Below, in pieces: positions 18,020 through 62,236 of a stretch of DNA of 64,000 bases. The notes beneath the pieces were generated by a model, which did no database searches, was not told the origin of the DNA, and saw only the letters and a program-made list of their open reading frames with translations. Source of the stretch: Isurus oxyrinchus (lineage: Eukaryota); the NCBI GenBank assembly GCA_026770705.1, contig JANJGN010000052.1:1302001-1366000 (forward strand), written 5' to 3'. A program made the position numbers and the translations under genes. The first letter of the stretch is position 1. Each line of letters opens with the position of its first letter.

Positions 18020-18159
18020 TCAAACAGTCTGTCGACTTCCTTTCACTGTTTGTTCCTCCCAGACACAGACTCCAGCGATAGTGATAGCCACAGCCACAAG
18101 GAATATCACAGCTCGTATTCCCAGGATCAGGATCACGTGCAGAATCTCTCCTCCACTGT
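18020..18159 (-). CDS. Gene B terminal TM/cytoplasmic exon: (D)SGGEILHVILILGIRAVIFLVAVAITIAGVCVWEEQTVKGSRQTV*
   Basis: tgtgttctctag acceptor; phase-1 reading gives a hydrophobic segment with a single Arg, a 12-aa tail after Trp and TGA at 18020-18022. Confidence 0.78.
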
Positions 18160-21100
18160 CTAGAGAACACACAGAAAGAAATCATCACTGACTCTCCGCT
18201 TTCAATCTCTCACTCTGGCTGAGCAATCAAGCTTCATATCACTGCAACATTTGCTGTAATATTGACCCATCCACTGGGATTCAATGTGGAATGAATGTTT
18301 TCACTGTAAACACTCTAAGAGTGGACAATCGGAACTTTCCCCTTAGCGTGGAACATTGGTGAGAATGGATCATTGTGCTGTTGGACTCCCTGTCCAATGT
18401 TTCTCTCCATCGCTGTGTACAGGATTGTGCTGTAGAAAATTCTGGAAACGTTTTGTGAAGGATGGAAATCCATCTCGGACGTGTGTGCGAATCGGGCAGG
18501 ATCGAGATGGAATCCCCCATGGACTTACACCCCCCGCTTAATAAACAGTTCCAATCTTTACCCAGAGAGAGGGGAGAATGTGGAACTCGCTCCCACTGGG
18601 AGTGGTTGATGTGAACAGTATCGATGTATTTACGGGGCAGGAGGGTCAGTAACCAGAGGGACACAGATTGACGAACTGGAGGGGGAGATGAGGAGAATTT
18701 GTTTTGACAGAGCGAGTTGTTGTGCTCTGGAAGGTGCTGCCTGAAAGGGCGGTGGAAGCAGATTCAATAGGAACTTTCAAAAGGGGAATTGGATAAACAC
18801 TTGAAGGAGGAAGATGGGGGCAAAGTGGAGTGGTGGTTAGTGGATCTGATGGGATAGAACATTGAAAGACCTGGCACAGGCACAATGGGCTGAATGGCTT
18901 CCTCCTGTGCTGTATCATTCTCCACTTCCATGATCTCTCCCCCAGTCAGTAACCACTCCAGATCCCTCTTGAAGGCAACAGAGCAACAGCAACCACCACA
19001 CCCACAGACAGCACATTCCCGAGGATCACTGCTCTCTGGGAAAAGATGAACTCCCCAACATCCAGCCTATTCCTGCTTCCCAGAGAGTGTAAACCCTTCA
19101 GGGAGGCACTGAGGAAGTTTTCAATAAAATGACATCAAATCTACCGTTTTAGAAATAATTTAATTCCGATGAACTCACAGCTTGTGAGGCAAACTGGGAA
19201 GTGGATTTGCTTGAAAAGCTGAGAGATGCAAGGGTTAAGTTCTACTGTGCACCACTGGTGGTACAGTGTAACTACAGCGTGACGTTTACATAGGCAATCC
19301 CTATTATAAACAAGGACATTGGACATCAGGTGAAATACGGGCAGTGGAAAAGTGAGAACATGATGTAAGCTTTTCACCAACAGGGATTCCCTTCCTAAAC
19401 CTCTCCACCTCTCTCTTACTCTCAGATACTCAAACAAAATTTCACACAGATTCAGGTAAGGAGGAGTTGGGACAATTGACTGGTCAAAGGGTTAGGTTTC
19501 AGGAAGCTTCTTAAAGGAGGATAGAGAGTTGGAGAGACAGAGAGTATCTGTGAGTGTCTCTATGCATCTGAGTGTCTGTAATAGACTTTGCAATTTCCAT
19601 ATTCTTCCATAAACATGAAAGAGAACAAAAATCTCAGAATCCAGGTCAACTCTCCAGTGCGGCACTGAGGGAGGTCAGGTAACCCACTGGGGAGTATTGT
19701 GCTAGTGTGTTTGTTTGTGTCTTTGTGTGTGCTCATATACGAGGGATTGTGTATCTGCAGGTGTCTATTTAGGTCTGTATATTTGTGTGTGTTTGTGTCA
19801 TGTTTCAATCTGAGACAGATGATGAAATCTGTGTACACTCACATTCCACAGTGATGGTTATGAATCCCTCCACTGCTCCATGTTCATTCTCTGCCAAACA
19901 CTGATAGTCTCCAGTGTCCCTGGATGTAACGTGAGGAATCACCAACCACAGCTCATTGTTGGAACTTGTTCTGTTCATTGTGATATTCAGATATCAGGGC
20001 AGGACTCAACAAGACAGATCGCATGTTTACCAACAGAGAGTGAACAACAATTTATATTTAAAGGGAAGAGAGTGCTGATTGGTTGGCAAGTGGTCTCTGA
20101 TAGGTGGATGTGTTGCCATGGAAAATAATGTGTGTGAGATTTAAAGTTTAAACAGCTTGTCTCTTCATTCAGCAACAATCAAATAAAGATCAATTAACTT
20201 CTATCGACTGTGAAGCTAATTGAGAGGCATGAGAATGTGGACACTGAGAACGGGCTGCACTGTCAGAGGGTCTGCGCTGAGGGAGTGCTGATGTAGAATG
20301 AAGGGTGTCCGTACTTACCTTGCACAGTTAGTACGAGGGTCCGCTCCGATGAAACAGATGGATATCTCACTCTGCAGCTGAGAGTGTGTCCGTGGTGTTT
20401 GAGTGATGGGATCAGGGTCAGAACAGAAGTATAGGTCAGAGTGACACCATGCTGAGTTACAGTGTTTGAGACTGATCCAGGTACGTCAGTGGGAGTGTCC
20501 CAGGTTAAGACAGGTGCTGCTGTTCTATTGCACGTTGTGTTGAAGGTGCAGCTTACATCCACACGCTTTCCTGCAATAATTTCAGCAGGGAATATCGTGG
20601 GTTTATCTGTGAAATCTAACAGACAGAGAATGGATCCTTTTAGAGAAATATAACGTGAAGCATCAGTTCAAAGAGAAATCACAGTCCCACAAGAGAAAGC
20701 ACTTTTACAAGGATGATATCAGAACTGAGAGGTTACAACGATCAGGAGAGAATTTCCTGCTTTGAGACTTTGGTGTTTCTGTCTCTCAGCTTAATACACG
20801 TTCACTCCGAGACACTTGAACTGATAATAGTGGGTGAGGGTGGAGGAGCAGACCAGAGTTTGGAGTGCACTACCTCATCATTCACTCAGCGATCTGGGCC
20901 ATTTAGTACTTTGCAATTGGAAGGAGATTGCTGTGCGCAAATTGGCTGCTGTGTTTCTCACATTACAACAGTAACTACAATTCAGGAATCAGCTCATTGG
21001 CTGTGAAGTGACTTGGTACATATTGAGGTGGTGAAAGGCTCCATAAAAATGTGAATCTTTCTTTTGTCGATATGTCAGTCTTCGAGACAGGATTAGAGAG

Positions 21101-24100
21101 AACGACGCGAGTGGATAACCTGATAACATTGATGGACACAGTCAATACATTTAATCATTGATATTAAACAAGTATTAGAGGTTGCTTTAGGACTGAACTG
21201 GAAGCTATCACCAGGTTATTGAGAATCAGACAGTGTGTTATAATAAGCTGTGTTTTGTGTTAATATGTAAACGTCACAGTTTGCGTTATTTCCCATTGAG
21301 TGTTGAATGTGAATTGTTGAGTAATTATAACACAGCACTTACCAGAAATGTGAAGCTGGGTTGCAGGATAGTAGCTGTAACTATTACTGTTGTCAAATTC
21401 TATTCTGAAATAATAAGGTCCTGCATCTTCCCGTCTGATGTTGTTTATAATCAGGGAACAGTCGCCATCTTTCAGGTCTCCAGACAGCCGGGTCCGTTGG
21501 TGGAACCGTGGTAACTCGTGACTGTGATCCTTGGAGTGAAAGGCTATAGACAATGTTCTCCATTCCTCATTATTAAACCAGACTCCACCTCGTGGTTGGT
21601 TTTCCAGACACGATGGATAACTGTAATGACATGGAATCTGTACACGCGAACCTTCCTGCGCTGTCACCTCTCGTGGAGTGTCACCTTTCCACTCTTGTGA
21701 CAGTCCAACTGGGGAGAAAAATATCAATATTTAACTCTGGATGTTTTATGGATCCACTGAACCCGATATTTACAGATGAGGCTGAATTGGGGGGATGGTC
21801 AATACTGAGGAGAATGGCAACAAATTATTTTGGCAGGAAGAATAGAAAAGCAGAATATTATTTAAATGGAGACAGGCTGCAGAATGCAGTACAGAGGGAT
21901 CTGGGTGTCCTTGTACATGAATCACAGAAAGTCAGCATTCAGGAACACCACAGAATGAGGAAGGCAAGTGGAATGTTGGCCTTTATTGTGAAGAGATGGA
22001 GTTTAAGAGGAGGTAAGTCTTGCAACAGCTGCACAGGGCGGTAGTGAGATTGTAACAGGATCATTGTGTACAGGCAGTTCAGAGAAGCTTCACTGGGCTG
22101 ATTCCTGGGATTAAAGGGTTTGTCCTGTGAGGAAATGTTGAGCAGGTTGGGCCTGTATCCATTGGAGTTTAGAAGAATGAGGGGTGACCTTATTGAAACA
22201 TATCCGATTCCGAGGGGGCTTGACAGGGTGGATGCTGGGAGGATGTTTCCCCCTCGTGGGGGAATCTAGAACCAGGGAGCACAGTTTCGGAATGAGGGCT
22301 CTCCCATTTAAGACTGAGATGAGGAGGAATTTCCTGTCTCAGAGGGGCGCTAGCCTGTGGAATTCTCTTCCCCAGAGAGCAGTGGAGGCTGGGCCATTGA
22401 ATAGACTCAAGGCTGAGTGAGGCAGGTTTTCGATCGACAAGGGAGTCAAGGGTTTGGGGGACAGGCAGGAAAATGGAGTTAAGGCCACAACCAGATCAGT
22501 GAGAGCAGGCTCGAGGGGCCGAATGGCCTGCTCCTGTCCCTATTTCTTATGTTCCTACATTCTTACCATCTTAAAATATTAAAGCTGCAGAGTAAACATG
22601 CAAGTGACTGACCCGCTCGGCCCACCTTCCATCTGGGGGTCCCATGGGGAGGACCCTTCCTGAGCCAGATCCACCAGCCAACATGGTCTGGATCCGAGCA
22701 CAGGAGACACGGGGGGGAGTGACTAACAGGCTCCTTGTGACAGGCCCCATCTGTCCAATGGCTGGCTTTCAGCTGCCAAGGCCAGAGTGGTCCTTGCTAA
22801 AACCAGCTCAGGACAGGTCAGGACCCCTGTGCAGACCCCCTCCAGCGCTGCAGCCTCTGTACAAACCCCTCATGCGCTTGTGGAGAGACACAAACAAGGC
22901 TGCACATTACCGAGGAGAATCCCCTCTACGGACTAAGGGGCTGACTCATCACCTTAAACTCAGCAAATGAGGAGGCTCTCGCTCGGTATCGGGGCTTGGC
23001 ATTCGCTCAATAAAAATAATCAAATTACATTTTGGTCAGAAATCTAAGCAGGTTGTACATTCCCTCAAAAATAAGACTCGAGCTGGGGTCGCGGGTCAAA
23101 GGGCAACAACTTATATTTACACAACAACTTTAACATGACAAATCACCCCAAGGTGCTACACAGGAGCGTCATAAAACAAAGTATGTCACCCAGACACGTG
23201 TGGAGATATTAGCGACAGCTGACCAGAAGAGGTCGGTGTTATGGAGAATCTTCAAAGAGGGATGAAATGGATAGGGAGAGAGAGAGAGAGATAGAAATAG
23301 AGAGAGAGAGAGAGCGAGAGTGAGAGAGAGGGATGGAGAGGGGTTGAGGGAGGGTATTACAGAGCTCGGGCCCCAGGCAGCTGAAGGCACGGCCGCCGAT
23401 ATTGCAGTGATGGGATCGGGGGATGGTCAAGAGGCTGGAATTGGATGAGCACAGAGACCTCAGAGGGTTGGAGGGGCTGGAGGAGTTTGCAGAGGTAGGG
23501 AGGTTTGTAGTGATTGGAGGAGTTATAGCGATAGGGAGGTTTTTAGGGGCTGGAAAAGTTAAGAGAGATTGGGGAGTGTAGAGTCTGGAGGAGTTTGCAG
23601 AGGTAGGGAGGGTTGTAGTGACTGGGGGAGGTTACAGAGGTAGGGAAAGTTGTCGGGACTGGAGCAGGCTACAGAGATAGGGAAGCTTTTAGGGGCAGGA
23701 GGAAGTTACAGAAATAGGGAGGTTTGTAGTGGCTGGAGGAGGTTGCAGAGATTGGTAGGTTTGTTGGGCAGGATCAATTTGCAGATATAGGGAAGCGGTA
23801 GATACTTCAAGAGGTTACAGAGAATGGGATGGTTGTAGGTACTGGAGGAGGACGAGGAGATTGCAGGGATAGTGAGGAAACAAAGATGAAAATTGTGACA
23901 TTGAGACTTTGCTTGACCAGGAGCCAGTCTCGGTCATCGAGCAGAGCAGGTGATAAGGGAACGGGACTTGGTGTGAGTAAGGACGTGGTCAGAAGTTTTG
24001 AATGGCCTCAAGTTTATGGAGTGTAGAGCGTGTGTTGGAACAGTCGAGTCTGGAGGTAATGAAGGCGTGGATGAGGGTTTCAGCAGCAGATGAGCTGAGA

Positions 24101-27100
24101 CAGGGTGAAGTCATGCGATGTTACGGAGGTGGAAATAGACGGTGTTAGTGAGGGCGCAGATATGAGGCCGGAAGCTCATCTCAGGATCAAATGGGACAAC
24201 AAAGCTGTGAACAGATTGGCTTCAATCTCAGAGAGCTGTCAGGGAGAGGAATGGAGTTGGTAGCGAGGGAACAGAGTTTGGAGCGGGGAATGAAGACAAT
24301 GGCTTCAGTCTTTCCAATATTTAATTGGAGGGAATTTCTGCCCATCCAGTACTGGATGTCGGATAAGCAGCCTGATAATTTAGCAGCAGTGGAGGAGTCG
24401 AGAGAGGTGGTGGTGAGGTAGAGCTGGGGATCCTCAGTGGACAGGTGAAAACTAACACTGTTCAGATGATGCTGCAAGGCCATTGCAAGTGATTCTCTGG
24501 CTACGATGAGATGGATAAGAATGGAGCCAGGGGAGAGCAGTCCCACCCAGCTGGACGACAGTGGAGAGGTGTTGGAGGAGGATGATGTGGTCAGCCGATC
24601 GCTCCCCTGTCACTCGCTGTCCTCCACTGGCTCCCAGTCCAACAATGACTCAATTTTCAAAATCTCTTCATTGATTCTTTATCCCTCCATCCTCCCTCTC
24701 TACTCCCTGTCACTGTCACCTCCTCCAGCCCTGAAACCCTTTGAGTTCTCTGCTGTCCTGCAGTTCTGCTGTCATTTCAGCAGGGAATATCGTGGGTTTA
24801 TCTGTGAAATCTAACAGACGGAGAATGGATCCTTTTAGAGAAATATAACGTGAAGCATCAGTTCAAATAGAAATCACAATCCCACAAGATTTTTATATAT
24901 TTTTATACTCCATTCCCTTTGAAATAAAGGCCAACATTCCAAATACATTGTGCATTTAAGTAAAGAGCCATTAATTTTGTCTTTTTATCATTTCCCCCCC
25001 TCTGACACTATTTGCTGATGTATTTTTATGTTTGGACACTGTGTCCCTTCCTGTCACAATCCCACAAGAGAAAGCACTTTTACAAGGATGATATCAGAAC
25101 TGAGAGGTTACAATGATCAGGAAATTATTTTAAACAGGATTAGAGAGATCGATGAGAGTGGATAACCTGATAACTTTGATGGACACAGTCAATACATTTA
25201 ATCATTGATATTAAAGTGAGTATTAGAGGTTGCTTTAGGACTGAACTGGAAGCTATAACCAGGTTATTGAGAATCAGACAGTGTGTTATAATAAGCTGTG
25301 TTTTGTGTTAATATGTAAACATCACAGTTTGTGTTAATTCCCATTGAGTGTTGAATGTGAATTGTTGAGTAATTATAACACAGCACTTACCAGAAACGTG
25401 AAGCTGGGTTACAGGATAGTAGTTGTAACTATTACTGCTGTCAAATTCTATCCTGAAGAAATAAGGTCCTGCATCTTCCCGTCTGATGTTGTTTATAATC
25501 AGGGAACAGTCGCCATCTTTCAGGTCTCCAGACAGCCGGGTCCGATGGTGGAACCGTGGTAACTCGTGACTGTGATCCTTGGAGTGAAAGGCTATGGGAG
25601 ATCCAGGAATCTGATTCTCGTTATTAAACCAGACTCCGACTCGTGGTTGGCTTTCCAAATGTGATGGATAACTGTAATGACATGGAATCTGTACACACGA
25701 ATCTTCCTGCGCTGTCACCTCTCGTGGTGTGTCACCTTCCCACTCTTGTGACAGTCCAACTGGGGAGAGAAATATCAATATTTAACTCTGGATGGTTTGT
25801 AGATCCACTAGACTCGATATCCACCCCGTCCATCACTGGGGCACTGTGGCTGCAGTGTGGACCATCTACAGGACACACAGGGATCTCCCCAAGGTTTCAC
25901 AATGGATGGAAGAGAATCCTGGACCCAGGAGTGGACAAGTTCATTCTACATTGGCTCATGGTGCTCAGGACCCTGTTTAGTGAAGCCAGTCTTCCACCCA
26001 ACACAGTGTCTCCAAGTCATGTGTTTTTCAAATTATCCGTTCATGGGATGTGCCCAGCATTTATTACCCATCCCATGTCCATCAGAGGCATTTAAGAATC
26101 AATTGTATTGCTGTGGGTTTGGAGTGACATGTAGGCCAGACTCGGTAAGGGTGGAGATTTCCTTCCCTGAAGGGGATCAGTGAACCAGGCTTTTTAATCC
26201 CATTCATCTGCTGTGATGGGATTCATACCCAGGGCCCCTGAGCATCACCCTGGGCCTCTGGAATACTAGCCCAGTGACAATACCTCTCTACTGCTGCTTC
26301 CCCTTAGTGAAGCCAGTCTTCCACCCAACACAGTGTCTACGAGACCCACCCATTGAGATCCATTCAGTGCTGATTTACAAGACAGGACAATGGATTAGGA
26401 GCCCTCAGAACTCCCCCCATTATCACCGTCATGAATCACTAATTAGCCTAACATTCCTGTCTGCTCTTCAACACAGCTGATTAGCTAATCTGATTCAATC
26501 TGATTGGTGCACTTTGTATCTTCATTGTCTAAGGAATCACTTTGGACCCTCATTGTCTAAGGAATCTCTTTGGATCCTCATTGTCTGAGGAATCTCTTTG
26601 GATCCTCATTGTCTAAGGAATCTCTTTGGATCCTCATTGTCTAAGGAATCTCTTTGGATCCTCATTGTCTAGGGGATTATTTCTGATCCAAACCCCATAT
26701 TGTTGTATTGTTGATTCCGATGCAGCATTGTAGACTGACTTGTCGCCAAGCTCAGCACTGACCCTACTCCAGCAGACACTGTGAAACACACTAACAAAGC
26801 GCCTCTCGCCTGAGCTCTGCATGTGTCGGAGGTGCCGCTGCGGTGGGTTCATGACTTTCAAAGATGGTGTTGTTTATTTGTTCAAACTGAACTGGGCCCC
26901 ACATGAAACGCTGATACCAGAAACTTCTTGTTCCCTGTCCTTCTGAAACATCTGTGATTCAGCAGGATTCTGAAGATTTGCTGATAAGGGTCTTAAATTG
27001 TCTGATTGTTGAATGATACAACACAGGAGGAGCTCATTTGACCCATCGTGCATGTGCTGGCTCTTTCCCAATTCCTCTCCAGCACCTTTCGCACATCCCT

Positions 27101-28272
27101 GCAAATTTCCCTTCAAGTATTTATCCAGTTCCCCTTCTGAAAGTTCCTGTTGAATCTGCTTCCACCGCCCTTTCAGGCAGTGAGTCAATGGTCTCTCTCT
27201 GAGCTGCAAAGTGCTCAGATTCTGTGAAATTTAAACTCTGCAGCAGGTCAGAGACACTCATGATAACTCAGAATATTTGTCACCTTTACACACAGACAGC
27301 TTTACCTTCCTTCTCTCTTTCAGTTATCTTGCTCCCTTATTGAAGTATCTAGCAAGGTGAGAATGGACAGGAAGTGTGACACTGAACAGCCTGTCTATTC
27401 TAGGAGCTGCTGTGTTGTCTTCATGGGAAATTCTGTCTAATATCAGCAAAAGACACAAATTTCAGGATATTGCCATCAGAATCCTAGCACCTGGATATAT
27501 TTCATCCCCCAGTTTTTATCCCTGACTTTCTGCTCAACCCATTACTCCCCGTCTCTCACTGACCAACACCCGACATCACCTGAAGTTTAAGATTCTGCTC
27601 TAGCTGCTACAATCCTGCCTAATTGTGTAACCGTTTCCAGCCCCTACAACACTCATGATAACTCAGAATATTTGACAGTTTTACACACAGACAGCTTTAC
27701 CTTCCTTCTCTCTTTCAGTTATCTTGTCCCTTATTGAAGTATCTAGCATGGTGAGAATGGACAGGAAGTGTGACACTGAACAGCCTGTCTATTCTAGGAG
27801 CTGCTGTGTTGTCTTCATGGGAAGTTTTGAATAAAGGCAGCAAAGGACACAAATTTCAGACCATTGCTATCGGAGACCTCGCAGCAGGATAGACTTCATC
27901 CCCCAGTTTTTATCTTTGCTTCTCTACTCAACCCATCACTCACTGACCAACGTCCGATAGCACCTGAATTTTAAGATCCTGCTCTCGCTGCTACAATTCT
28001 GCTGAACTTTGTAACGTCCTCCAGTCCCTACAACTCTCTGAGATCTCTGATCACTTCCAATTCTGCTGTCAGACAGGGAGTCAGTGTATATCAGTGAGCA
28101 CAGGGGTGATGGGTGAATGGGACTTGGTCTGAGTTTGTGCACAGGGTCACTGCTGAATCGGTTCCCAATCACAGCTCAATAAGAATGATCCTTTACAGAG
28201 ACTATTAACATTAAATCTGATGATGATATTACCTTGGAGAAGTGACAGGAGGAAGTAAGATTTCCCAATCAT
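18020..28272 (-). CDS. Gene B: activating-type Siglec-like receptor (leader-V-V-C2-TM with Arg, short tail), predicted 403 aa
   Basis: Exons 28233-28272, 25391-25759, 21343-21708, 20319-20615 and 18020-18159 join in frame (1212 nt). This assumes the broken C2 exon at 19843-19995 is skipped. Confidence 0.72.
19843..19995 (-). pseudogene. Gene B broken repeated-type C2 exon (3' half only)
   Basis: Matches the 3' ~150 nt of the 282-nt exons; the 5' half and acceptor are replaced by about 185 bp of unrelated sequence. Confidence 0.8.
20319..20615 (-). CDS. Gene B Siglec domain-2-type C2 exon
   Basis: 297 nt, phase 1-1, near-identical to 4379-4675 and 55596-55892. Confidence 0.9.
21343..21708 (-). 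CDS. Gene B second V-set exon (PYYFRIEF; first Cys replaced by Arg)
   Basis: 366 nt, phase 1-1, open frame. Confidence 0.9.
21770..22560 (+). mobile_element. CR1-type LINE fragment (duplicate of 5915-6705)
   Basis: Near-identical sequence and ORFs. Confidence 0.8.
23100..24590 (-). mobile_element. L2/CR1-group LINE fragment with expanded 37-bp repeats
   Basis: DPQLY..LSGCLSDIQYWMGRNSLQLNIGKTEAI RT C-terminal motif; paralog of 6760-7790. Confidence 0.75.
24716..24810 (-). pseudogene. Relic 5' end of a domain-2 C2 exon between V1 and V2 of gene B
   Basis: Intact acceptor, then [12 protein letters not shown], then diverges and reads MTAELQDSRELKGFQGWRR*. Confidence 0.75.
25391..25759 (-). CDS. 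Gene B first V-set exon (PYFFRIEF)
   Basis: 369 nt, phase 1-1, open frame. Confidence 0.92.
26522..26671. repeat. 28-bp tandem repeat (tcattgtctaaggaatctctttggatcc) x5
   Basis: Exact 28-bp spacing; about 2 copies at the paralogous site 60950-61010. Confidence 0.9.
28233..28272 (-). CDS. Gene B leader exon, coding part [13 protein letters not shown]
   Basis: 40 nt, gtaat donor; putative non-coding exons upstream (28346-28434; donor next to 28706). Confidence 0.85.
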
Positions 28273-30769: not shown

Positions 30770-30772
30770 ATG

Positions 30773-30811
<39 letters not shown>

Positions 30812-45900: not shown

Positions 45901-46684
45901 CAATTATATTGATCGATGAAACGTTAATCATATCCAGAGAAGTAATTAAGAGATTCCGTGGTGTGTCTAAAAATAAATAAAGATTTTAATGTGAGCAAGC
46001 ATAGTGCGCAGCAAGACTCCATGCATCATCTCTCTGTATCTGATGTTGGAATGCCTTTCCAGGTACCTTCCCTCATGAAAAATTACTGTCACATTTATAA
46101 TAGGCATTTCCTATGTAAACTGTCACACTGCAGTTGCATTCTCCCACCAGTAGAGTTGCTGTCCATCTAGAATGAAAGAAACATCGTTTAACACTCTCAA
46201 GATGCCCCCAAGGGATTGAAAGCCATTGAATTGTATTTGATTGATGGAGCACTGAGGGGTAAATCTACCATTCTCTGTTCAGGAGGTTGCTCATCCAATT
46301 CAGGGTCTTGTTGATCTGGAGTTTACCTTCCTTCAACACAGAATCGAAGCTGATACCGAGACTCCAGTGCGGCCCTGAGAGAGAAGAGGGACCTCACACG
46401 TGTTTATGTGTACGTGTTTGTGTTTGTACATATGTGAGTATGTTTGTGTGAGTAAATGCATGCATGTGTCTGTGTGTGCATGTATGTGTTTGCGCATATG
46501 TGAGTGTGTCTTTGTGTATATTTCTGTGCATGAGTGAATGTGTGTACATGTGTATGTGTATGTGTGTGCATGTGTGAGTGTGTGTGTGTGAGTTGAGTGT
46601 GTGTATGTTTCTGTGTATATTTTTGCACGCGTATGTTTGTGTGTGTAAATGTGCATGTATGTGTCTACACGAGTGCATGTTGTG

Positions 46685-46730
<46 letters not shown>

Positions 46731-47751: not shown

Positions 47752-47812
<61 letters not shown>

Positions 47813-50800: not shown

Positions 50801-52471
50801 CTCTCTCTCCACCACCCCCCCCACCCCCCACACCTTAAACCAGCTTATATTTCAACTCTTTCTTGGACTCGAACTCAAGTTCTGTTGAAGGGTCATGAGG
50901 ACTCGAAACGTCAACTCTTTTCTTCTCCGCCGATGCTGCCAGACCTGGTGAGTTTTTCCAGGTAATTCTGTTTTTGTTTTACGCTGTAATTACTGCCTTC
51001 CACCAGAGGAGACACTGTTGTGCTAGAAGAAAAGAAAATGCCTTTCACATCATCAGGATGTTCACAGGGATTTGACAGTGGAGGAATTGCTTTAGAATAA
51101 TGGGGTATTGAGTGATAAACCTACAATTCTCTGTGCAGGGGGCTGCTCGTCCAATACAGGGACTTGTTCAGCTGATGTCGTCAGTGTTTCAGAGCAGAAT
51201 CTGGAGCAACACTCCAGTGCAGCACAGGGAGAACAGACAACACACACATGTCTGTGTGTGTGTGTGAGCAAGCACACGTGTGATTCTGTATGAATGTTTC
51301 TGTGTGTGAGCATGCAGGCGTGCACACCTGTGCACATGTGGGATTCAACATGAATGCTTGTTTGTGTGCGCACTTGTCTNNNNNNNNNNNNNNNNNNNNN
51401 NNNNNNNNNNNNNNNNNNNNNNNNNNNNNNNNNNNNNNNNNNNNNNNNNNNNNNNNNNNNNNNNNNNNNNNNNNNNNNNNNNNNNNNNNNNNNNNNNNNN
51501 NNNNNNNNTCACGTTCCACAGTGATGGTTATGAATCCCTCCACTGCTCCATGTTCATTCTCTGCCACACACTGATAGTCTCCAGTGTCCCTGGATGTAAC
51601 GTGAGGAATCACCAACCACAGCTCATTGTTGGAACTTGTTCTGTTCACTGGGACATTAAGATGTCGCCACATCAGGTTAGAAGCTGGGAAGCTCTCGACA
51701 GAGCACATTATCACTGCAGAATTCTCCTCAATTATATTGATCGATGAAGCATTAATCATATCAAGAGAAGTAATTGAGACATTCTGTGGTCCATCTAAAA
51801 ACATATAAAGATTTTAATGTGAGCAAGCACAGTGCACAGCAATACTCCATGCATCATGTCTCTGTATCTGATGTCTGAATGCATTTCCAGGTACCTTCTC
51901 TCAGGATAAGAACTTATTTCACATTTACAATGGTCACTGCCTATGTAAACTGTCACACTGCAGTTACATTCTCCCACCAGTGGAGGTGTCCATCTAGAAT
52001 GCAGGAAACTCCCTTTCAGATCCTCAGGATGTCCCCAAGGGCTTCAAAGGCAATGAATTGTATTTGATCAATGGAGCACTGAGGGGTAAATCTACAATTC
52101 ACTGTTAAGGAGGTTTCTCCATCCAATTCAGGGTCTTGATGATCTGGAGTTTACCTTCCTTCAACACAGAATCGGAGCTGATACTGAGACTCCAGTGCAA
52201 CACTGAGAGAGGAGAGGGTACCCACACGTTTTTGTGTGTGTATGTGTGTGTTTACTTGTGTGTGTGTATGTTTCTNNNNNNNNNNNNNNNNNNNNNNNNN
52301 NNNNNNNNNNNNNNNNNNNNNNNNNNNNNNNNNNNNNNNNNNNNNNNNNNNNNNNNNNNNNNNNNNNNNNNNNNNNNNNNNNNNNNNNNNNNNNNNNNNN
52401 NNNNNNNNNNNNNNNNNNNNNNNNNNNNNNNNNNNNNNNNNNNNNNNNNNTTTCTGCATGTCTGTATGTAT

Positions 52472-52540
<69 letters not shown>

Positions 52541-54667
52541 TGAGTGATGTTTGTAGTTTGCAGTAACTCACATTCCACAGTGATGGTTATGAACCCCTCC
52601 ACTGCTCCATGTTCATTCTCTGCCACACACTGATAGTCTCCAGTGTCCCTGGATGTAACGTGAGGAATCACCAACCACAGCTCATTGTTGGAACTTGTTC
52701 TGTTCATTGGGACATTAAGATGTCGCCACGTCAGGTTAGAAGCTGGGAAGCTCTCGACAGAGCAGATTATCACTGCAGAATTCCCCTCAATTATGTTGAT
52801 CGATGAAGCGTTAATCATATCAAGAGAAGTAATTGAGACATTCTGTGGTGGATCTAAAAACATATAAAGATTTTAATGTGAGCAAGCACAGTGCACAGCA
52901 AGACTCCATGCATCATGTCTCTGTATCTGATGCCTGAATGCGTTTCCAGGTACCTTCCCTCAGGATAAGAACTTATTTCACATTTACAACGGGCACTGCC
53001 TATGTAAACTGTCACACTGCAGTTACATTCTCCCACCAGTGGAGGTGTCCATCTAGAATGCAGGAAACTCCCTTTCAGATCCTCAGGATGTCCCCAAGGG
53101 CTTCAAAGGCAATGAATTGTATTTGACCAATGGAGCACTGAGGGGTAAATCTACAATTCACTGCTCAGGAGGTTGCTCCATCCAGTTCAGGGTCTTGATA
53201 ATTTGGAGTTTACCTTTCATCAACAAAGAATAGGAGCTGATACCGAGGCTCCAGTGCAGCACTGAGAGAGGAGAGGGAACCCACACGTTTTTGTGTGTGA
53301 ATGTGTGTGTTGGCTTGTGTGTGTGTATGTTTCTGCACAATAAGGATCTGTGTGTGTGCACGCATGCATGTGTGTTTGTGTGTGTGTGCGCACGTGTGTC
53401 TGTCTGTGCGTGTGTGTGTGTGTGTGAGTGTGTGTGTGTGTCTGAGTGTGTGCGTGTGTGTGTGAGNNNNNNNNNNNNNNNNNNNNNNNNNNNNNNNNNN
53501 NNNNNNNNNNNNNNNNNNNNNNNNNNNNNNNNNNNNNNNNNNNNNNNNNNNNNNNNNNNNNNNNNNNNNNNNNNNNNNNNNNNNNNNNNNNNNNNNNNNN
53601 NNNNNNNNNNNNNNNNNNAACTCACGTTCCACAGTGATGGTTATGAACCCCTCCACTGCTCCATGTTCATTCTCTGCCACACACTGATAGTCTCCAGTGT
53701 CCCTGGATGTAACGTGAGGAATCACCAACCACAGCTCATTGTTGGAACTTGTTCTGTTCATTGGGACATTAAGATGTCGCCACGTCAGGTTAGAAGCTGG
53801 GAAGCTCTCGACAGAGCAGATTATCACTGCAGAATTCCCCTCAATTATATTGATCGCTGAAGCATTAATCATATCAAGAGAAGTAATTGAGACATTCTGT
53901 GGTCCATCTAAAAACATATAAAGATTTTAATGTGAGCAAGCACAGTGCACAGCAATACTCCATGCATCATGTCTCTGTATCTGATGTCTGAATGCATTTC
54001 CAGGTACATTCCCTCAGGATAAGAACTGATTTCACATTTACAATGGTCACTGCCTATGTAAACTGTCACACTGCAGTTACATTCTCCCACCAGTGGAGGT
54101 GTCCATCTAGAATGCAGGAAGCTCCCTTTCAGATCCTCAGGATGTCCCCAAGGGCTTCAAAGGCAATGAATTGTATTTGACCAATGGAGCACTGAGGGGT
54201 AAAACTACAATTCTCTGTTCAAGAGGTTTCTGCATTCAATTCAGTGTCTTGATGATCTGGAGTTTACCTTCCTTCAACACAGAATCAGAGCTGATACTGA
54301 GACTCCAGTGCAGCACTGAGAGAGGAGAGGGAACCCACATGTTTTTGTGTGTGTATGTGTGTGTTGGCTTGTGTGTGTGTATGTTTCTGTAAAATAAGGA
54401 TCTGTGTGTGNNNNNNNNNNNNNNNNNNNNNNNNNNNNNNNNNNNNNNNNNNNNNNNNNNNNNNNNNNNNNNNNNNNNNNNNNNNNNNNNNNNNNNNNNN
54501 NNNNNNNNNNNNNNNNNNNNNNNNNNNNNNNNNNNNNNNNNNNNNNNNNNNNNNNNNNNNNNNNNNNNTCTGCATGTGTGTATGTATATGTGTGTGTGTG
54601 TATGTGTGTGTGTGTGTGAGTTGAGATTGTGTGTTTCTGCATGTGTGTATGTATATGTGTGTGTGTA

Positions 54668-54734
<67 letters not shown>

Positions 54735-57700
54735 CTGAGTGATGTTTGAAGTTTGCAGTAACTCACATTCCACAGTGATGGTTATGAACCCCTCCACTGC
54801 TCCATGTTCATTCTCTGCCACACACTGATAGTCTCCAGTGTCCCTGGATGTAACGTGAGGAATCACCAACCACAGTTCATTGTTGGAACTTGTTCTGTTC
54901 ATTGGGACATTAAGATGTCGCCACGTCAGGTTAGAAGCTGGGAAGCTCTCGACAGAGCAGATTATCACTGCAGAATTCCCCTCAATTATATTGATCGATG
55001 ATGCATTAATCATATCAAGAGAAGTAATTGAGAGATTCTGTGGTGCATCTAAAAACAAATAAACATCAATTAACTTACACTGACTGTGAAGCACTTTGAA
55101 AGACACTTAGAATGTGAAAGGTGTGATATCAATATAGGTTCTTTCACCACAAAGCCCATAATCCAGGCAGACACCTCAGTTCAGTACTGAGGGAGTGCTG
55201 CATTGTCGGAGGGTTAGTACTGAGGGAGTGCTGCACTGTCGAAGGGTCAGTACTGAGGTAGTGCTGCACTGTCAGTGGATCAGTACTGAGGGAGTGTTGC
55301 ACTGTCAGAGGTTCAGTACTGAGGGAGTGCTGCACTGACGAAGCGTCAGTACTGAGGGAGTGCCGCACTGTCGAAGGGTCAGTACTAAGGGAGTGCTGCA
55401 CTGTCAGTGGATCAGTACTGAGGGAGTGTTGCACTGTCAGAGGTTCAGTACTGAGAGACTGCTGCAGTGTCAGAGGTGAATTTGTATCAGTTAAAGACGA
55501 TTGATTTGTAGCTAAACACAATGAATTTGTGGGATCTTGCAGTGTACTATGTGGAGCTTTCTAGCTAATGTAGATGGAAGGGAGTCGGTACTTACCTTGC
55601 ACAGTTAGTACGAGGGTCCGCTCTGATGAAACAGATGGATATCTCACTCTGCAGCTGAGAGTGTGTCTGTGGTGTTTGAGTGATGGGATCAGGGTCAGAA
55701 CAGAAGTATAGGTCAGAGAGACACCATGCTGAGTTACAGTGTTTGAGACTGATCCAGGTACGTCAGTGGAAGTGTCCCAGGTTAAGACAGGTGCTGCTGT
55801 TCCATTGCACGTTGTGTTGAAGGTGCAGCTTACATCCACACGCTTTCCTGCAATAATTTCAGCAGGGAATATCGTGGGTTTATCTGTGAAAACTAACAGA
55901 CAGAGAATGGATCCTTTTAGAGAAATATAACGTGAAGCATCAGTTCAAATAGAAACCACAGTCCCACAAGAGAAAGCATTTTTACGAGGATGATATCAGA
56001 ACTGAGATGTTTTAACGATCCTGATAGACTGTTAGACACGATTAGAGAGATCGATGGGAGTGGAATACATTTAATCATTGATATTAAAGTGAGTATTAAA
56101 GGTTGCTTTAGGACTGAACTGGAAGTGATCACCAGGTTATTGAGAATCAGACAGTGTGTTATAATAAGCTGTGTTTTGTGTTAATATGTAAACGTCACAG
56201 TTTGTGTTATTTCCCATTGAGTGTTGGCTGTGAATTGTTGAGTAATTATAACACAGCACTTACCAGAAACGTGAAGCTGGGTTACAGGGTAATAGTTATA
56301 GCCCGGACCATTGCCAAATTCTATTCTGAAAAAGTAAGGTCCTTCATCTTCCCGTCTGATGTTGTTTATAATCAGGGAACAGTCGCCATCTTTCAGGTCT
56401 CCAGACAGCCGGGTCCGATTGTGGAACCGTGGTAACTCGTGACTGTGATCCTTGGAGTGAAAGGCAATGGGAGCCCAGGGAATCTGTTCCTCATTATTAA
56501 ACCAGACTCCACCTCGCGGTTGGTTTTCCAGACACGATGGATAACTGTAATGACATGGAATCTGTACACACGAACCTTCCTGCGCTGTCACCTCTCGTGG
56601 AGTGTCACCTTTCCACTCTTGTGAGGGTTCAGCTGGGGAGAGAAATCTCAATATTTAACTCTGGATGGTTTGTGGATCTACTGAACCCGATATTTACAGA
56701 TGTTGCTGAATTGGGGGGATGGTCAATACTGAGGAGGACTGCAACAAATTACAGGAAGATATACATTCTGATGAAGAATCATACGGACTCGAAACGTTAA
56801 CTCTGTCTTCCTCTCCACAGATACTGTCAGACCTGCTGAGATTTTCCTGCAATTTTTGTTTTAGTTACAGATTTCCAGCATCTGGAGAATTTTGCTTTTA
56901 CATTACAGAAAGATATTAATAAACTTGCAGAATGGGCAGGTCATTGACAAATGAGTTTCTGCGTTAATAAATGTGAGGCATTACATTTTGTTCAAGAAAA
57001 TGAGGAGCTTGAATCTTACCTCGAAAATAAGAATCTAATTGGGGTAGAGGAACAACGTGATCTGGGGCAGAAATACAGGAATCAGTAAACGTGGGGACAC
57101 AGGTTAACAAGGGAATTAAACATACAAACTAAACACTCGAGATTATTTCTCCAGGGATTGAATTGAAAAGTAGAGAAGTGATGTGAAACTTGTCCTGATC
57201 CTCGGTCTGACTGCACCTGGAGTCACGTGTGCAGTTCTGGCCCCCATATTGTAAAAAGGATATGGAGACACTGGAGAGGGTGGTAAAAAGCTTCACAAGG
57301 ATGATCTCCGCAATGTGAGGCTTTACCTATCAGGAGAGGATGTACAGGCTGGGTCTCTGTTCTCTTGAACAGAGAAGGTTGAAGGGTGACCTCATTTGAT
57401 CTTTGAAGTAATGAAAGGTTTTGATCGAGTAGACATGGAGAGAGTGTTTCCACTCCTCACAATGAACAAAATTAGAAGCTGACAATATAAGATCCTCACT
57501 AATAAATCCAATGGGGAATTCAGGAGAAACTTCTTTACCCAGAGAGTGGGGAGAATGTGTACTTCAAGAATCACTTCATTGGCTGTGAATCAGTTTAGGA
57601 TCGTCCTGAGGTGGTAAAAGGCGCTATGGAAATGTGAGACTTACTTTTGTATTTTGAAAGCAGGTTTTCAAGGATGAGATGGGAACTGAGAGGTAACAAC

Positions 57701-60700
57701 AATCAGCAGCAACTTTCCTATTTTCAAACTTGGTGGGGAATGTGTCACTGAGCTGAATACACTTTCACTCCCAGTCCCTTGACTTGACAACACCGGGGTG
57801 TGGGTGATGGAGCAGTCCACAGCTCATGGAACCCTGGCTCATCGTTCTCTCAGAGATCTGGGTCACTGATCCCATTGCTCTCTGTGGGAGCTTCCTGTGT
57901 ACAAACTCACTGCCACGTTAGACAGTGACTATACTTCAAGAATTTCTTCATTGTCTGTGAAATGATTTGGTACGTGCTGAGGTGATGAAAGACGCTATAG
58001 GAATGCAAGTCTTTACTTTGTCGATTTGTCAGACTTTTAAACAGGATTAGAGAGACTGATGGGAGTGGATAGCCTGATAGCATTGATGGACACAGTCAAT
58101 ACATTTAATCATTGATATTAAAGTGATTATTAGAGGTTGCTTTAAGACTGAACTGGAAGCAATCACCAGGTTATTGAGAATCAGACAGTGTGTAAAAATA
58201 AGCTGTGTTTTGTGTTAATATGTAAACGTCACAGTTTGTGTTATTTCCCATTGAGTGTTGGATGTGAATTGTTGAGTAATTATAACACAGCACTTACCAG
58301 AAACTTGAAGCTGGGTTACAGGGTAATAGTTATGGCTCGGACCATTGTCAAATTCTATTCTGAAAAAATAAGGTCCTGCATCTTCCCGTCTGATGTTGTT
58401 TATAATCAGTGAACAGTCGCCATCTTTCAGGTCTCCAGACAGCCGGGTCCGATGGCGGAACCGTGGTAACTCGTGACTGTGATCCTTGGAGTGAAAGGCA
58501 ATGGGAGCCCAGGGAATCTGTTTCTCATTATTAAACCAGACTCCACCTCGCGGTTGGTTTTCCAAATGTGATGGATAACTGTAATGACATGGAATCTGTA
58601 CACACGAACTTTCATGAGCTGTCACCTCTCGTGGAATGTCACCTTTCCACTCTTGTGACAGTCCAACTGGGGAGAGAAATATCAATATTTAACTCTGGAT
58701 CTTTTTTCGATCCACTAGACTTGATATCCACCCCCTCCATCACTAGGGCACAGTGGCTGCAGTGTGGACCATCTACAGGACACACAAGGAACTCCCCAAG
58801 GTTTCACAATGGATGGAAGAGAATCCTGGACACAGGAGTGGACAAGTTCATTCTACATTGGCTCATGGTCCTCAGGACCCTGTTTAGTTTTTTCAAATTA
58901 TTCATTCATAGCATTTATTACCCATCCCATGTCTATCAGAGGTATTTAAGATTCAACCAAATTGCTGTGGGTTTGGAGTGACATGTCGGCCAGACTGGGT
59001 AAGGGTGTCAGATCTCCTTCCCTATACCAGGCTTTTTAATCCCATTCATCTGCTGTGATGGGATTTACACCCAGGGCCCCAGAGCATCACCCTGGGCCCC
59101 TGGAATACTAGCCCAGTGACAATACCTCTCTGCTACCGCTTCCCCTTAGTGAAGCCAGTCTTCCACCCAACACAGTGTCTACAAGACCCACCAATTGAGA
59201 TCCATTCAGTGCTGATTTACAAGACAGGACAATGGATTAGGAGCCCTCAGAACTCCCCCCATTATCACCGTCATGAATCACTAATTAGCCTAACATTCCT
59301 GTCTGCTCTTCAACACAGCTGATTGGCTAATCTGATTCAATCTGATTGGTGTTCATTCCCTCTTCAATGTTTAAGGAATCACCAATCACTCGGCCTCTAG
59401 TTATTCTCTTGCCCACAAGAGGGAACATTCTCTATCTACCCAGTCAATCAAAACCTTTTATCTAAACCTAATGGTGCTTGAGTATATAGTCGGGAATCCA
59501 GGGCAATGGAGCCTCAGGAGAAGAGATGGAAACCCTGTGAGGTGGAACGTCACTGAGGCCATCCGAGTTGAAGCGACTTTTGGAGAGAATTCCAAGGCAA
59601 GATCTTCGAAGTTGAAGATTGGAATCCCTCATGAGAGAAACAGAGTTTCAGTGAGATTGGTTGACTGACAGTGTTCACTGATGTCCGGGTGGGTTGTTGT
59701 GAAATCCATGGGCTCTATCTTGGTCGCGTTTACGATTTAATGAGTAGTACGGCTGTGAGACCACAGTTTGCCTGTTAATTCACATGAGCTCATATTAATC
59801 CAGAATGTTAGGGTATAAGGTGGATATTGTGAATTATTTTATCTTTCTGACCTGGTGCAGTAAAGTTTATTTTTGTTTGTTTAAAAGCCATGGAAACTCT
59901 GTTTCTCTCATGAGGGATTCCAATCTTCAACTTCGTACATCCTGCCTTGGAATTCTCTCCAAAAGTCGCTTCAACTCGGATGGCCTCAGTGACGTTCCAC
60001 TCACAGGAATCTTGTAGCTTTATTCTCTTCGCAGGCGTCTTAAATCTCAAACCTCGTCTACTTGAAACAAAATATTATTGGTTCCTAACTGTAAATTACG
60101 AAAAAAAATTGGTTTCTGTTCCTCCATCAGCAACTCTTCAGAATCCTGCTGAAGTCACGGATATTTCAGAAGGACAGGGAACAAGAGGTTTCTGGTATCA
60201 GCGTTTTGTGTGGGGCCCAGTTCAGTTTGAACAAATAAACAACACCATCTTTGAAAGTCATGAACCCACCGCAGCGGCACCTCCGACACATGCAGAGCTC
60301 AGGCGAGAGGCGCTTTGTTAGTGTGTTTCACAGGGTCTGCTGGAGTAGGGTCAGTGCTGAGAGGGTCTGCTCAAGGATCATAACAACCTGCACTTGCACC
60401 TTCCAAGTAATAAGATTTTGTAAATGTATTCATTCATGGGATGTGGGCGTCGCTGCCAAGGCCAGCATTTGCTGCCCATCTCTAATGTCCCGTGACATAA
60501 TCTCTGTAGCAGAGTAGAGACAATCATGATCACTCAGGATATTTGACATCTATCCACATGAGCAGCTTTGCCTTCCTTCTCTCTTTCAGTTATCTTACTC
60601 CCTTATTGAAGTTTCTAGCATGGTGAGAACTGGATGGTTTGCTCGGACATTTCAGAGGAACCACGTTGCTATGAGTCTGGAGTCACATGTAGGCCAGACC

Positions 60701-62236
60701 AGATATAGACGGCAGATTTCCTTCCCTAAAGGCCATTAGTGAACCAGATGGGTGTGTATGACAATCGATGATAGTTTCATGGTCTCCATTACTGAGACTA
60801 ACTCCCATTAGTGTAAACAGAGTGAACAGTTTTCCATTGATCCCACCTTTCCCGTTCTCTCCGGTATTTTACACACTATTGCTCGAAGTTTTGATTCTGC
60901 CAAGGACCCCTTGGAAAATTATGGACCCCAGTTAGACAACCAATGGAATAAGAAATCTCTTTGGATCCTCATTGTCTGAAGAATCTCTTTGTATCCTCAT
61001 TGTCTAAGGGATTATTTCTGATCCAAACCCCATATTGTTGTATTGTTGATTCCGATGCAGCATTGTAGACTGACTTGTCCCCAAGCTCAGCACTGACCCT
61101 ACTCCAGCAGACACTGTGAAACACACTAACAAAGCGCCTCTAGCCTGAGCTCTGCATGTGTCGGAGGTGCCGCTGTGGTGGGTTCATGACTTTCAAAGAT
61201 GCTGTTGTCATTTTTTTTGTTCAAACTGAACTGGGCCCCACATGAAATGCTGATACCAGAAACTTCTTGTTCCCTGTCCTTCTGAAACATCTGTGATTCA
61301 GCAGGATTCTGAAGATTTGCTGACAAGGGTCTTAAATTGTCTGATTGTTGAATGATACAACACAGGAGGAGCTTGTTTGACCCATCGTGCATGTGCTGAC
61401 TCTTTCCCAATTCCTCTCCAGCACCTTTCGCACATCCCTGCAAATTTCCCTTCAAGTATTTAGCCAGTTCCCCTTCTGAAAGTTCCTGTTGAATCTGCTT
61501 CCACCGCCCTTTCAGGCAGTGAGTCAATGGTCTCTCTCTGAGCTGCAATGTGCCCAGATTCTGTGAAATTTAAACTCTGCAGCAGATCAGAGACACTCAT
61601 GATAACTCAGAATATTTGACAGTTTTACACACAGACAGCTTTGCCTCCCTTCTCTCTTTCAGTTATCTTGCTCCCTTATTGAAGTATCTAGCAAGGTGAG
61701 AATGGACAGGAAGTGTGACACTGAACAGCCTGTCTATTCTAGGAGCTGCTGTGCTGTCTTCATGGGAAGTTTTGAATAATGGCAGCAAAGGATACAAATT
61801 TCAGGTTATTGCTATCGGATAACTCTCATTAGGATAGGCTTCACCCACCAGGTTTTATCCCTGCTTCTCTATTCAATCCATCAATCCCCATTGCTCACTG
61901 ACCAACGTCTGACAGCACCTGAATTTTGAGATTCTGCTCTCGCTGCTACAAACCTGCCTATCCCTGTACACTCCTCCAGCCCCTACAACCCTCCAAGGCC
62001 TCTGGTCTCCTCCAATTCTGCTGTCAGACAGGGAGTCAGTGTATATCAGTGAGCACAGGGGTGATGGATGAATGGGACATAGTGTGAGTTTGTACACTGG
62101 CTCACTGCTAAATCAGTTCCCAATTAGAGGTCAATAAGAATGTTCTTTTACAAAGACTATTAACCATAAATCTGTCCGAGCTGATGATGATCTTACCTTG
62201 GAGAAGTGACAGGAGGAAGTAAGATTTCCCGATCAT
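39722..62236 (-). CDS. Gene A: inhibitory Siglec-like receptor (leader-V-V-C2-8xC2-TM-ITIM/ITSM tail), 15 coding exons, predicted 1252 aa
   Basis: Exons 62197-62236, 58298-58666, 56264-56632, 55596-55892, eight 282-nt exons, 43998-44094, 43039-43120 and 39722-39970. All have GT-AG boundaries and compatible phases; the sum is 3759 nt = 1253 codons including stop. Siglec V-set motifs and CD33-like tail motifs are present. Confidence 0.88.
40159..42818. repeat. 33-bp satellite, about 80 copies (cagtgcagcactccctcagtactgaccctctga), in the last intron of gene A
   Basis: Clear 33-bp periodicity; it generates the spurious [11 protein letters not shown] / [11 protein letters not shown] ORFs. Confidence 0.97.
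43039..43120 (-). CDS. Gene A cytoplasmic exon ([27 protein letters not shown])
   Basis: ttgcag acceptor and gtacag donor, 82 nt, phase 2-0, bridging the TM exon and the last exon exactly. Confidence 0.82.
43998..44094 (-). CDS. Gene A transmembrane exon ([33 protein letters not shown])
   Basis: 97 nt, phase 1-2, uncharged TM. Confidence 0.9.
44912..45193 (-). CDS. Gene A repeated C2 Ig exon 8 (membrane-proximal)
   Basis: 282 nt, AG/GT boundaries, phase 1-1, open. Confidence 0.9.
45685..45966 (-). CDS. Gene A repeated C2 Ig exon 7
   Basis: 282 nt, AG/GT boundaries, phase 1-1, open. Confidence 0.9.
46759..47040 (-). CDS. Gene A repeated C2 Ig exon 6
   Basis: 282 nt, open; carries the ATGHYQC variant of DTGDYQC. 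Confidence 0.9.
47836..48117 (-). CDS. Gene A repeated C2 Ig exon 5
   Basis: 282 nt, AG/GT boundaries, phase 1-1, open. Confidence 0.9.
48652..50980. mobile_element. Penelope-like element with inverted arms and a 13-bp target-site duplication
   Basis: [39 protein letters not shown] on the minus strand (49192-49521) with an inverted copy on plus; acgctgtaattac at 48639-48651 and 50981-50993. Confidence 0.88.
51513..51794 (-). CDS. Gene A repeated C2 Ig exon 4
   Basis: 282 nt, open; donor visible next to an N run. Confidence 0.88.
52572..52853 (-). CDS. Gene A repeated C2 Ig exon 3
   Basis: 282 nt, AG/GT boundaries, phase 1-1, open. Confidence 0.9.
53626..53907 (-). CDS. Gene A repeated C2 Ig exon 2
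   Basis: 282 nt, AG/GT boundaries, phase 1-1, open. Confidence 0.9.
54767..55048 (-). CDS. Gene A repeated C2 Ig exon 1 ([43 protein letters not shown]...[14 protein letters not shown])
   Basis: 282 nt; C..W..DxGxYxC Ig signature. Confidence 0.9.
55180..55475. repeat. 33-bp satellite, about 9 copies
   Basis: Read directly. Confidence 0.9.
55596..55892 (-). CDS. Gene A Siglec domain-2-type C2 exon
   Basis: 297 nt, phase 1-1 (an alternative in-frame acceptor lies 9 nt downstream). Confidence 0.9.
56264..56632 (-). CDS. Gene A second V-set exon (starts AEPSQEW; PYFFRIEF)
   Basis: 369 nt, phase 1-1, open. Confidence 0.92.
56690..57560 (+). mobile_element. CR1-type LINE fragment interrupted by a ~140-bp Penelope-type solo pLTR (56763-56902)
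   Basis: [11 protein letters not shown] motif; insert flanked by ttacag(g/a)aagatat at 56749-56762 and 56903-56916. Confidence 0.7.
58298..58666 (-). CDS. Gene A first V-set exon (PYFFRIEF)
   Basis: 369 nt, phase 1-1, open. Confidence 0.92.
62197..62236 (-). CDS. Gene A leader exon, coding part [13 protein letters not shown]
   Basis: 40 nt, gtaaga donor; putative non-coding exons upstream (62310-62398; donor next to 62669). Confidence 0.87.

Follow-up and report, generated by a model that had tools for sequence, protein, structure and literature searches.

Inhibitory-type and activating-type Siglec-like genes side by side in a probable tandem cluster of the shark Isurus oxyrinchus

Paired Siglecs, in which an inhibitory receptor has an activating counterpart, are mostly treated as a recent response of primates to pathogens that turn inhibitory Siglecs to their own use. 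The locus described here raises the question of whether a shark has Siglec-like receptors of opposite signalling type side by side and, if so, whether they make a pair. We analysed a stretch of 64,000 nucleotides (nt) of Isurus oxyrinchus DNA, called the window, to which our statements on gene content refer; homology searches were run exon by exon. Self-comparison and motif searches identified three tandem paralogous Siglec-like genes on the minus strand, named A, B and C (Table 1). A preliminary description had presented A and B as paired inhibitory and activating receptors in a probable shark locus. The nearest named proteins to the window exons are indeed from Carcharodon carcharias, at about 97-98% identity, with Cetorhinus proteins at no more than 97%. 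Our analysis points to an arrangement wider than a pair. The window is probably a slice of a tandem multigene Siglec-like cluster that mixes inhibitory-type and activating-type members in a lamniform shark.

Siglec-type ectodomains and opposite signalling ends

The three genes share a common plan. The leader peptide, said earlier to be the same in A and B, is identical in all three, and each leader exon has a phase-1 gt donor. Every immunoglobulin (Ig) exon is in phase 1-1 and has ag/gt borders. The window exons match the Pfam families V-set, Ig_CD22, C2-set_2 and I-set. A protein search with the C2 exon gave a single match, a partial C. carcharias 'Siglec-12', and the I-set exon of A matched MAG and Siglec-8 among many Ig proteins.

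The V-set exons identify the family. When a V exon was compared with proteins of solved structure, the top 17 matches were all Siglecs, the best being Siglec-5, MAG, Siglec-8, Siglec-10, CD33, Siglec-7 and sialoadhesin (E 3e-15 to 2e-12). Bit scores were 59.5 for Siglec-5, 56.5 for MAG, 56.3 for Siglec-8, 55.2 for CD33 and 50.5 for sialoadhesin; Siglec-15 scored 33.6 and CD22 21.9. By this measure the V domain is clearly not of the CD22 or Siglec-15 type, and the scores do not separate the CD33-related group from MAG or sialoadhesin. The shark YFFR motif aligns on the essential arginine of Siglec-5 ('edtgsyffrve'). YFFR or YYFR is present in both V-set exons of A, in both of B and in the second of C. 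The first V-set exon of C reads ...AGYYLFGTEFD..., so that glycine replaces the essential arginine, and this exon shares only 64-70% identity with the remaining V exons. The cysteine pattern of Siglecs (CxxxxC, CSL) is present too, with 'scvqipc' on 'lcvlvpc' and 'dcsl' on 'ncsl' of Siglec-5. The second V exon of B departs from it in the window, where the first cysteine is replaced by Arg; the contigs described below all have Cys. In the stretch DAGPYFF a phenylalanine takes the canonical F-strand cysteine position, again as in the Siglec pattern. Judged at the level of sequence, the genes carry the defining features of the Siglec (I-type lectin) family. Both A-type and B-type receptors would bind sialylated ligands by means of the YFFR arginine.

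The internal V exons of all three genes have an additional cysteine (YPSCLENQ) where the N-terminal V exons have histidine (YPSHLE). This cysteine may form an inter-domain disulfide between the two V domains.

Conversely, the 3' ends of A and B differ, much as the preliminary description had stated. Gene A has an uncharged transmembrane (TM) segment and a tail with two tyrosine motifs, TEYAQI lying 23 residues downstream of LFYANI. At the motif level, LFYANI fits the immunoreceptor tyrosine-based inhibitory motif (ITIM) pattern [SIVL]xYxx[ILV], and TEYAQI fits TxYxx[VI], the pattern of an immunoreceptor tyrosine-based switch motif (ITSM). With its Siglec-type V-sets, uncharged TM and ITIM plus ITSM-like tail, gene A is by its predicted features an inhibitory-type member.

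Gene B ends differently. Its terminal exon is preceded by a pyrimidine tract and ag ('...ttctttctgtgtgttctctag') and, read in phase 1 (the upstream G and AC give Asp), encodes DSGGEILHVILILGIRAVIFLVAVAITIAGVCVWEEQTVKGSRQTV. The hydropathy of this product is that of a TM helix broken by a single arginine (codon 18115-18113), which lies about one third into the helix counted from outside. A tail of 12 residues without tyrosine follows. The position of the arginine cannot tell a DAP12-type from an FcR-gamma-type partner. We inspected all six frames of the whole window and found about eight other hydrophobic 21-residue windows outside (CA)n repeats. A usable acceptor in the right phase accompanies just the two A-type TM exons and the terminal exon of B. 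With blastn and tblastn, A and C yielded no further arginine-TM exon, and B yielded neither a TM exon of the A type nor an ITIM exon; all that survives there is 47-170 nt of an A-type 3' untranslated region (UTR). Gene B, with its leader, related V-V-C2 exons, arginine TM and short tail free of motifs, is on these features an activating-type member.

The model of B depends on a splice from the C2 donor at 20319 to 18159, which the preliminary description had predicted and had made the test of its proposal. We aligned contigs of four public runs to positions 16900-21800, which hold the V2, C2 and terminal exons. The predicted joint is present: contigs from three runs of one sample (X1, X2 and X4) join 20319 directly to 18159. 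They skip 2159 nt, and the borders, CT..AC on the plus strand, correspond to GT..AG on the minus strand. On its shorter side the joint is flanked by 143 nt in X1 and 161 nt in X4, and by 28 nt in X2. The V2, C2 and terminal exons were covered in X1 and X4, and depth there was about zero in the intron bins 18212-18539, 19032-19359 and 21000-21327. Depth was continuous from 18159 down to about 17064, close to an AATAAA at 17036. The joint and the exon-only depth of X1 and X4 fit spliced RNA with a 3' UTR of about 1.1 kb that ends near this AATAAA. In X10, a large run from another organism, the introns were covered and the 20319/18159 joint was absent from the contigs.

Remnants inside B indicate its history. 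Between the C2 and terminal exons lies an I-set exon reduced to its 3' half; it lacks an acceptor, has stops upstream and is skipped by the observed splice. Further downstream lies the piece of A-type 3' UTR, from which the ITIM-coding part is missing. These two remnants suggest that B derived from an inhibitory-type gene. The 3' end of that ancestor would have been deleted or replaced, leaving a gene that now ends on the arginine-TM exon and that probably still uses the old polyadenylation region.

Two repeats were noted in B. The probable 3' UTR includes a reverse-transcriptase-like fragment of a long interspersed nuclear element (LINE; 17343-17714, plus strand), at which contig depth is very high owing to copies from elsewhere in the genome. 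In intron 1, shortly downstream of the leader, some 400 nt are duplicated in tandem (27254-27658 versus 27649-28041, 86% identity), with a single-copy counterpart in A at 61593-61993.

The arginine cassette and its family in elasmobranchs

We scanned proteins with HMMER using the 46-residue arginine-TM exon of B as query. The scan found the cassette at the C-terminus of eight proteins (E 1.8e-13 to 7e-4, 65-80% identity) from Scyliorhinus torazame, Chiloscyllium punctatum, Hemiscyllium ocellatum, Rhincodon typus and Mustelus asterias. Their RefSeq or GenBank names are CD33-like, Siglec-12, Siglec-13, CD22-like (twice), sialoadhesin-like, SLAM family member 9-like and hypothetical protein, the last having a similar ectodomain. 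One further HMMER match was rejected; its alignment is internal and runs over seven repeated stretches. Further cassettes turned up in later searches, in one more S. torazame model (P0012) and in three orectolobiform models, of which one belongs to a sixth species, Chiloscyllium plagiosum. A search with the cassette region returned no cassette-bearing model from a lamniform, a blank that is uninformative under the word and length limits of that search.

The core ILGIRAxIF...V....GxCV is invariant in ten aligned cassettes, the window exon included. Such conservation rules out a chance open reading frame (ORF) and argues for a conserved intramembrane contact. The arginine-TM exon is an old and conserved cassette that is attached to several shark receptor families and is not particular to B.

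The ectodomain identifies a larger family. The V-C2 part of a cassette-bearing bamboo-shark protein retrieved 73 proteins, all from sharks, skates and rays, which RefSeq names automatically as Siglec-5, -8, -10, -11, -12 or -13, CD33-like or MAG-like. Their C-termini fall into three classes: the tail LLYANINF...TEYAQIRFQ, as in gene A, which recurs in many elasmobranch members; a second, tyrosine-rich tail; and the arginine cassette. Cassette and ITIM forms share a chromosome-scale contig in S. torazame and C. punctatum, with stretches of ectodomain that are 76-96% identical. The window thus belongs to an expanded family, spread over elasmobranchs, in which members of both signalling types occur.

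The tyrosine-rich tail was not seen in the window. Its C-terminal pattern is ...YENC...(D/N)(I/L)YANC(N/D)...(V/I)Y(G/A)N(V/I), with several YxN motifs and a YxxC-x7-YxxV spacing that resembles an ITAM (immunoreceptor tyrosine-based activation motif). Carriers include models P0020, P0022, P0026, P0031, P0036, P0042, P0044, P0057 and P0058.

Pair or cluster, and the standing of gene B

How close a pair are A and B? Their V-V-C2 ectodomains had been called near-identical, which proved too strong. At the amino-acid level the leader is 100% and C2 95.9% identical, and V1 and V2 reach just 87.7% and 87.4%; eight I-set exons are present in A in addition. The V differences are clustered, for example in the stretch 'NNENQIPGSP' and in 'DNGPSHNYY' versus 'DSSNSYNYY'. 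At the nucleotide level the flanking introns are 93-94% identical and the V exons about 91%. Since the introns are at least as similar as the exons, there is no sign of gene conversion or of other homogenisation directed at exons. With V domains about 12% apart and eight extra Ig domains in A, a common ligand cannot be assumed.

Gene C is relevant here. Its TM exon encodes a protein sequence identical to that of A, so C is probably of the inhibitory type, with its tail outside the window. It shares the V-V-C2 layout of B. A second inhibitory-type neighbour with B's layout makes it arbitrary to pair A with B. Of the paired-receptor architecture claimed in the preliminary description, the opposite ends and the Siglec-type V domains stand; the close match of ectodomains and the choice of A as B's partner are not fully supported.

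It could well be, at a little under an even chance in our estimate, that A and B are diverged paralogues with differing ligand specificities, B being no mirror counter-receptor of A and the two types coexisting as in KIR/LILR-like or NITR-like families. The clustered V differences, the similarity of intron flanks, the I-set exons of A and the layout of C all fit this, as do the dozens of family members per species with their three tail classes. Conversely, an identical leader and a C2 domain with 96% identity tie A and B together, and adjacent genes with opposite signalling ends are a paired family in the broad sense. A, B and C are, on their predicted structures, a mixed multigene cluster and not a strict pair.

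Several observations weigh against the reading of B as a working activating-type gene at this very locus. The three runs with the joint represent one sample, their RNA nature was guessed automatically, and the evidence consists of contigs, not reads. Furthermore, window and spliced contigs disagree at 18087, 18054-55, 20526 and 21646. All of these differences are non-synonymous: compared with the window, the contigs have Val for Ala and Arg for Glu in the cassette, Gly for Arg in C2, and Cys for Arg in V2. In each case the contig has the residue of paralogues or orthologues, and the window is the non-consensus copy. The V2 change affects the inter-domain cysteine (codon 21646-21644), which is Arg in the window and Cys in all contigs. 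Hence, a different allele of B, or a paralogue nearly identical to it, may be the source of the transcripts, and the window copy of B may be slightly degraded. The differences could reflect a private allele, an assembly error or contigs of a near-identical paralogue.

On a rival account, the window copy of B would be decaying or non-functional, and the spliced transcripts would come from a near-identical functional paralogue elsewhere in the cluster. The direction of the four changes, away from the family consensus, with loss of a conserved V2 cysteine, is what this account would expect, and at 21646 and 20526 the base of the window is found in no contig from the four runs. We nevertheless consider it unlikely. 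All exons of B are open and its splice sites are intact. Three contigs of the 3' UTR (17154-17374, 17465-17587 and 17854-18046) have 0 differences from the window, a point in favour of this very locus as the transcript source. In C2 there is one difference in 278-298 nt, far below the 4% between the C2 exons of A and B, and an allelic difference or an assembly error fits equally well.

How would B, read as an activating-type receptor, signal? In the well-studied cases, a basic TM residue with a short tail lacking motifs pairs with the TM aspartate of DAP12, DAP10, FcR-gamma or CD3-zeta, and ITIM/ITSM tails recruit SHP-1 and SHP-2 (PMC6288428). By analogy, B-type proteins would need an ITAM adaptor with an acidic TM residue, of the DAP12, FcR-gamma or CD3-zeta kind, and A-type tails would recruit SH2 phosphatases. 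The adaptor coupling of B is a prediction by this analogy. The arginine form might instead be non-signalling, acting as a decoy or being retained or shed, with the arginine serving as a signal for endoplasmic reticulum retention or for assembly with a partner other than an ITAM adaptor. A cassette tail without any motif would suit such a role. It is nonetheless improbable, for the ILGIRA core and the helix positions downstream of it stay unchanged in three or more families of receptors and in several orders of sharks, as fits an intramembrane contact between proteins, and the well-studied vertebrate receptors with a basic TM and a short tail all pair with an adaptor aspartate (PMC6288428). That the terminal exon is a chance ORF in non-coding DNA is effectively refuted: a few other hydrophobic stretches do arise by chance in the window, but this exon has a canonical acceptor in phase, is joined to C2 in contigs and is C-terminal in eight proteins from five other shark species.

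Known systems, gene models and other features

The human pairs Siglec-5/Siglec-14 and Siglec-11/Siglec-16 are, like the shark genes, neighbours with related N-terminal domains, one member having an ITIM plus ITIM-like tail and the other a basic TM and a short tail (PMC6288428, PMC4042635). The differences are equally clear. The ligand-binding domains of the human pairs are near identical through gene conversion, whereas the shark V domains are about 88% identical and show no sign of conversion. Unlike the human genes, those of the shark have two V-sets, A has up to eight additional I-set domains, and the TM cassette is common to CD22-like and SLAM-like receptors. Coupling to DAP12 has been demonstrated for human receptors; for shark B it is predicted by analogy.

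Two tandem N-terminal V-sets followed by C2-sets and an inhibitory tail are also found in human and chimpanzee Siglec-12, and the loss of the V arginine in human Siglec-XII (R122C) parallels YLFG in the first V-set of shark C (PMC6288428). The name 'Siglec-12' of shark RefSeq models denotes a best match only and not orthology, and the duplication of the shark V exon was probably independent. More generally, CD33-related Siglecs resemble the shark proteins in their V-set with CxxxxC, CSL and YFFR, in a C2-set second domain, and in a membrane-proximal ITIM followed 23 residues later by a distal TEY-type motif. Human Siglec-7 and Siglec-9 have this same motif spacing.

Lineage-specific tandem clusters that mix ITIM members with short-tailed, charged-TM members are known for KIR/LILR/PIR, for teleost LITR and for Xenopus CEACAM and FcR-like genes (PMC5112662, PMC2413239, PMC4810170). 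The shark cluster differs from these Ig-superfamily families in its Siglec-type V-set as ligand-binding domain and in its lineage, the cartilaginous fish. Fish are described as regularly having only Siglec-1, CD22, MAG and Siglec-15 and as lacking CD33-related Siglecs, in an account that is focused on teleosts and leaves cartilaginous fish unmentioned (PMC7226832). In the whale-shark genome paper, Siglec families receive passing mention only. We found no description of paired Siglecs in sharks in the literature covered, which excludes most subscription journals.

An origin of the shark system independent of the primate pairs is a reasonable inference, since gene conversion specific to their lineage shaped the primate pairs (PMC6288428), and other receptor families of sharks carry the shark cassette as well. 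A broader proposal is tentative, and we think it rather doubtful: that the CD33-related design (a YFFR V-set, an ITIM plus TEY-type tail and adaptor-coupled partners) was ancestral to jawed vertebrates and lost in teleosts, and that one universal arginine-TM cassette converts at least three shark families (Siglec-like, CD22-like and SLAM-like) into activating forms. If this were true, the CD33-related design would not be a tetrapod or mammalian innovation. Independently of that proposal, the expanded and probably expressed shark cluster, which combines the two tail types with a conserved TM cassette of the adaptor kind, shows the same design in the oldest living lineage of jawed vertebrates. 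It offers concrete genes for dating Siglec-based self-recognition and its activating counterpart, and it draws attention to a TM cassette found throughout sharks, whose partner adaptor could be identified. Its contribution is of a comparative and evolutionary kind; the principle is an established one, and automatic RefSeq annotation labels such shark genes as Siglec-like already.

The coordinates of the gene models and assembly gaps are collected in Table 1. All six gaps are intronic or intergenic, and no exon or reading frame is crossed by one. Two of them begin close behind an I-set donor GT, at a distance of 4 nt (51380-51508) and 7 nt (53467-53618). With four gaps in the introns of the I-set array, the count of eight I-set exons in A is uncertain.

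Table 1. Positions of Siglec-like gene models, their exons and assembly gaps in the window
Feature	Position	Strand	Remark
Gene A	62236 to 39722	minus	
A leader exon	62197..62236	minus	phase-1 donor
A V-set exon 1	58298..58666	minus	YFFR arginine kept
A V-set exon 2	56264..56632	minus	YFFR; additional BC-loop Cys
A C2-set exon	55596..55892	minus	
A I-set array	44912..55048	minus	eight intact 282-nt exons
A I-set exons 1-4	55048-54767, 53907-53626, 52853-52572, 51794-51513	minus	
A I-set exons 5-8	48117-47836, 47040-46759, 45966-45685, 45193-44912	minus	
A uncharged TM exon	43998..44094	minus	
A cytoplasmic exon 1	43039..43120	minus	82 nt; matches C. carcharias model P0051
A last coding exon	39722..39970	minus	ITIM LFYANI and ITSM-like TEYAQI; stop 39724-39722
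Gene B	28272 to ~17060	minus	
B leader exon	28233..28272	minus	peptide as in A and C
B V-set exon 1	25391..25759	minus	YFFR
B V-set exon 2	21343..21708	minus	YYFR
B C2-set exon	20319..20615	minus	donor at 20319
B truncated I-set pseudo-exon	19843..19992	minus	3' half only
B arginine-TM exon, coding part	18020..18159	minus	stop 18022-18020
B probable 3' UTR	17060..18019	minus	same terminal exon; includes LINE fragment
A-type 3' UTR remnant in B	17008..17176	minus	77-87% identity to 39522-39696
Gene C	193..14877	minus	continues past window start
C leader	14877	minus	
C V1	8676-8302	minus	divergent; YLFG in place of YFFR
C V2	5857-5489	minus	
C C2 exon	4675-4379	minus	
C I-set remnant	ends at 4115	minus	
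C A-type TM exon	291-193	minus	protein identical to A's TM
Gap	51380-51508		right after donor GT of an I-set exon, gene A
Gap	53467-53618		right after donor GT of an I-set exon, gene A
Gaps	52276-52450, 54411-54568		inside CA-repeat introns, gene A
Gaps	31848-32004, 35808-35961		intergenic, between A and B

Repeats occupy several of the non-coding parts of gene A and its surroundings. The intron between the two cytoplasmic exons of A is filled by a 33-nt minisatellite (40159-42825; 80.8 copies, 91% matches), the source of spurious long ORFs on the two strands, and there are shorter copies close to 55144-55521 and 29127-29351. Between I-set exons 4 and 5 of A lies a retroelement-like ORF present as an inverted duplicate (about 49192-49943 and 49719-50541) with mirrored translations. 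A further reverse-transcriptase-like LINE fragment is found at 38094-38516 on the minus strand.

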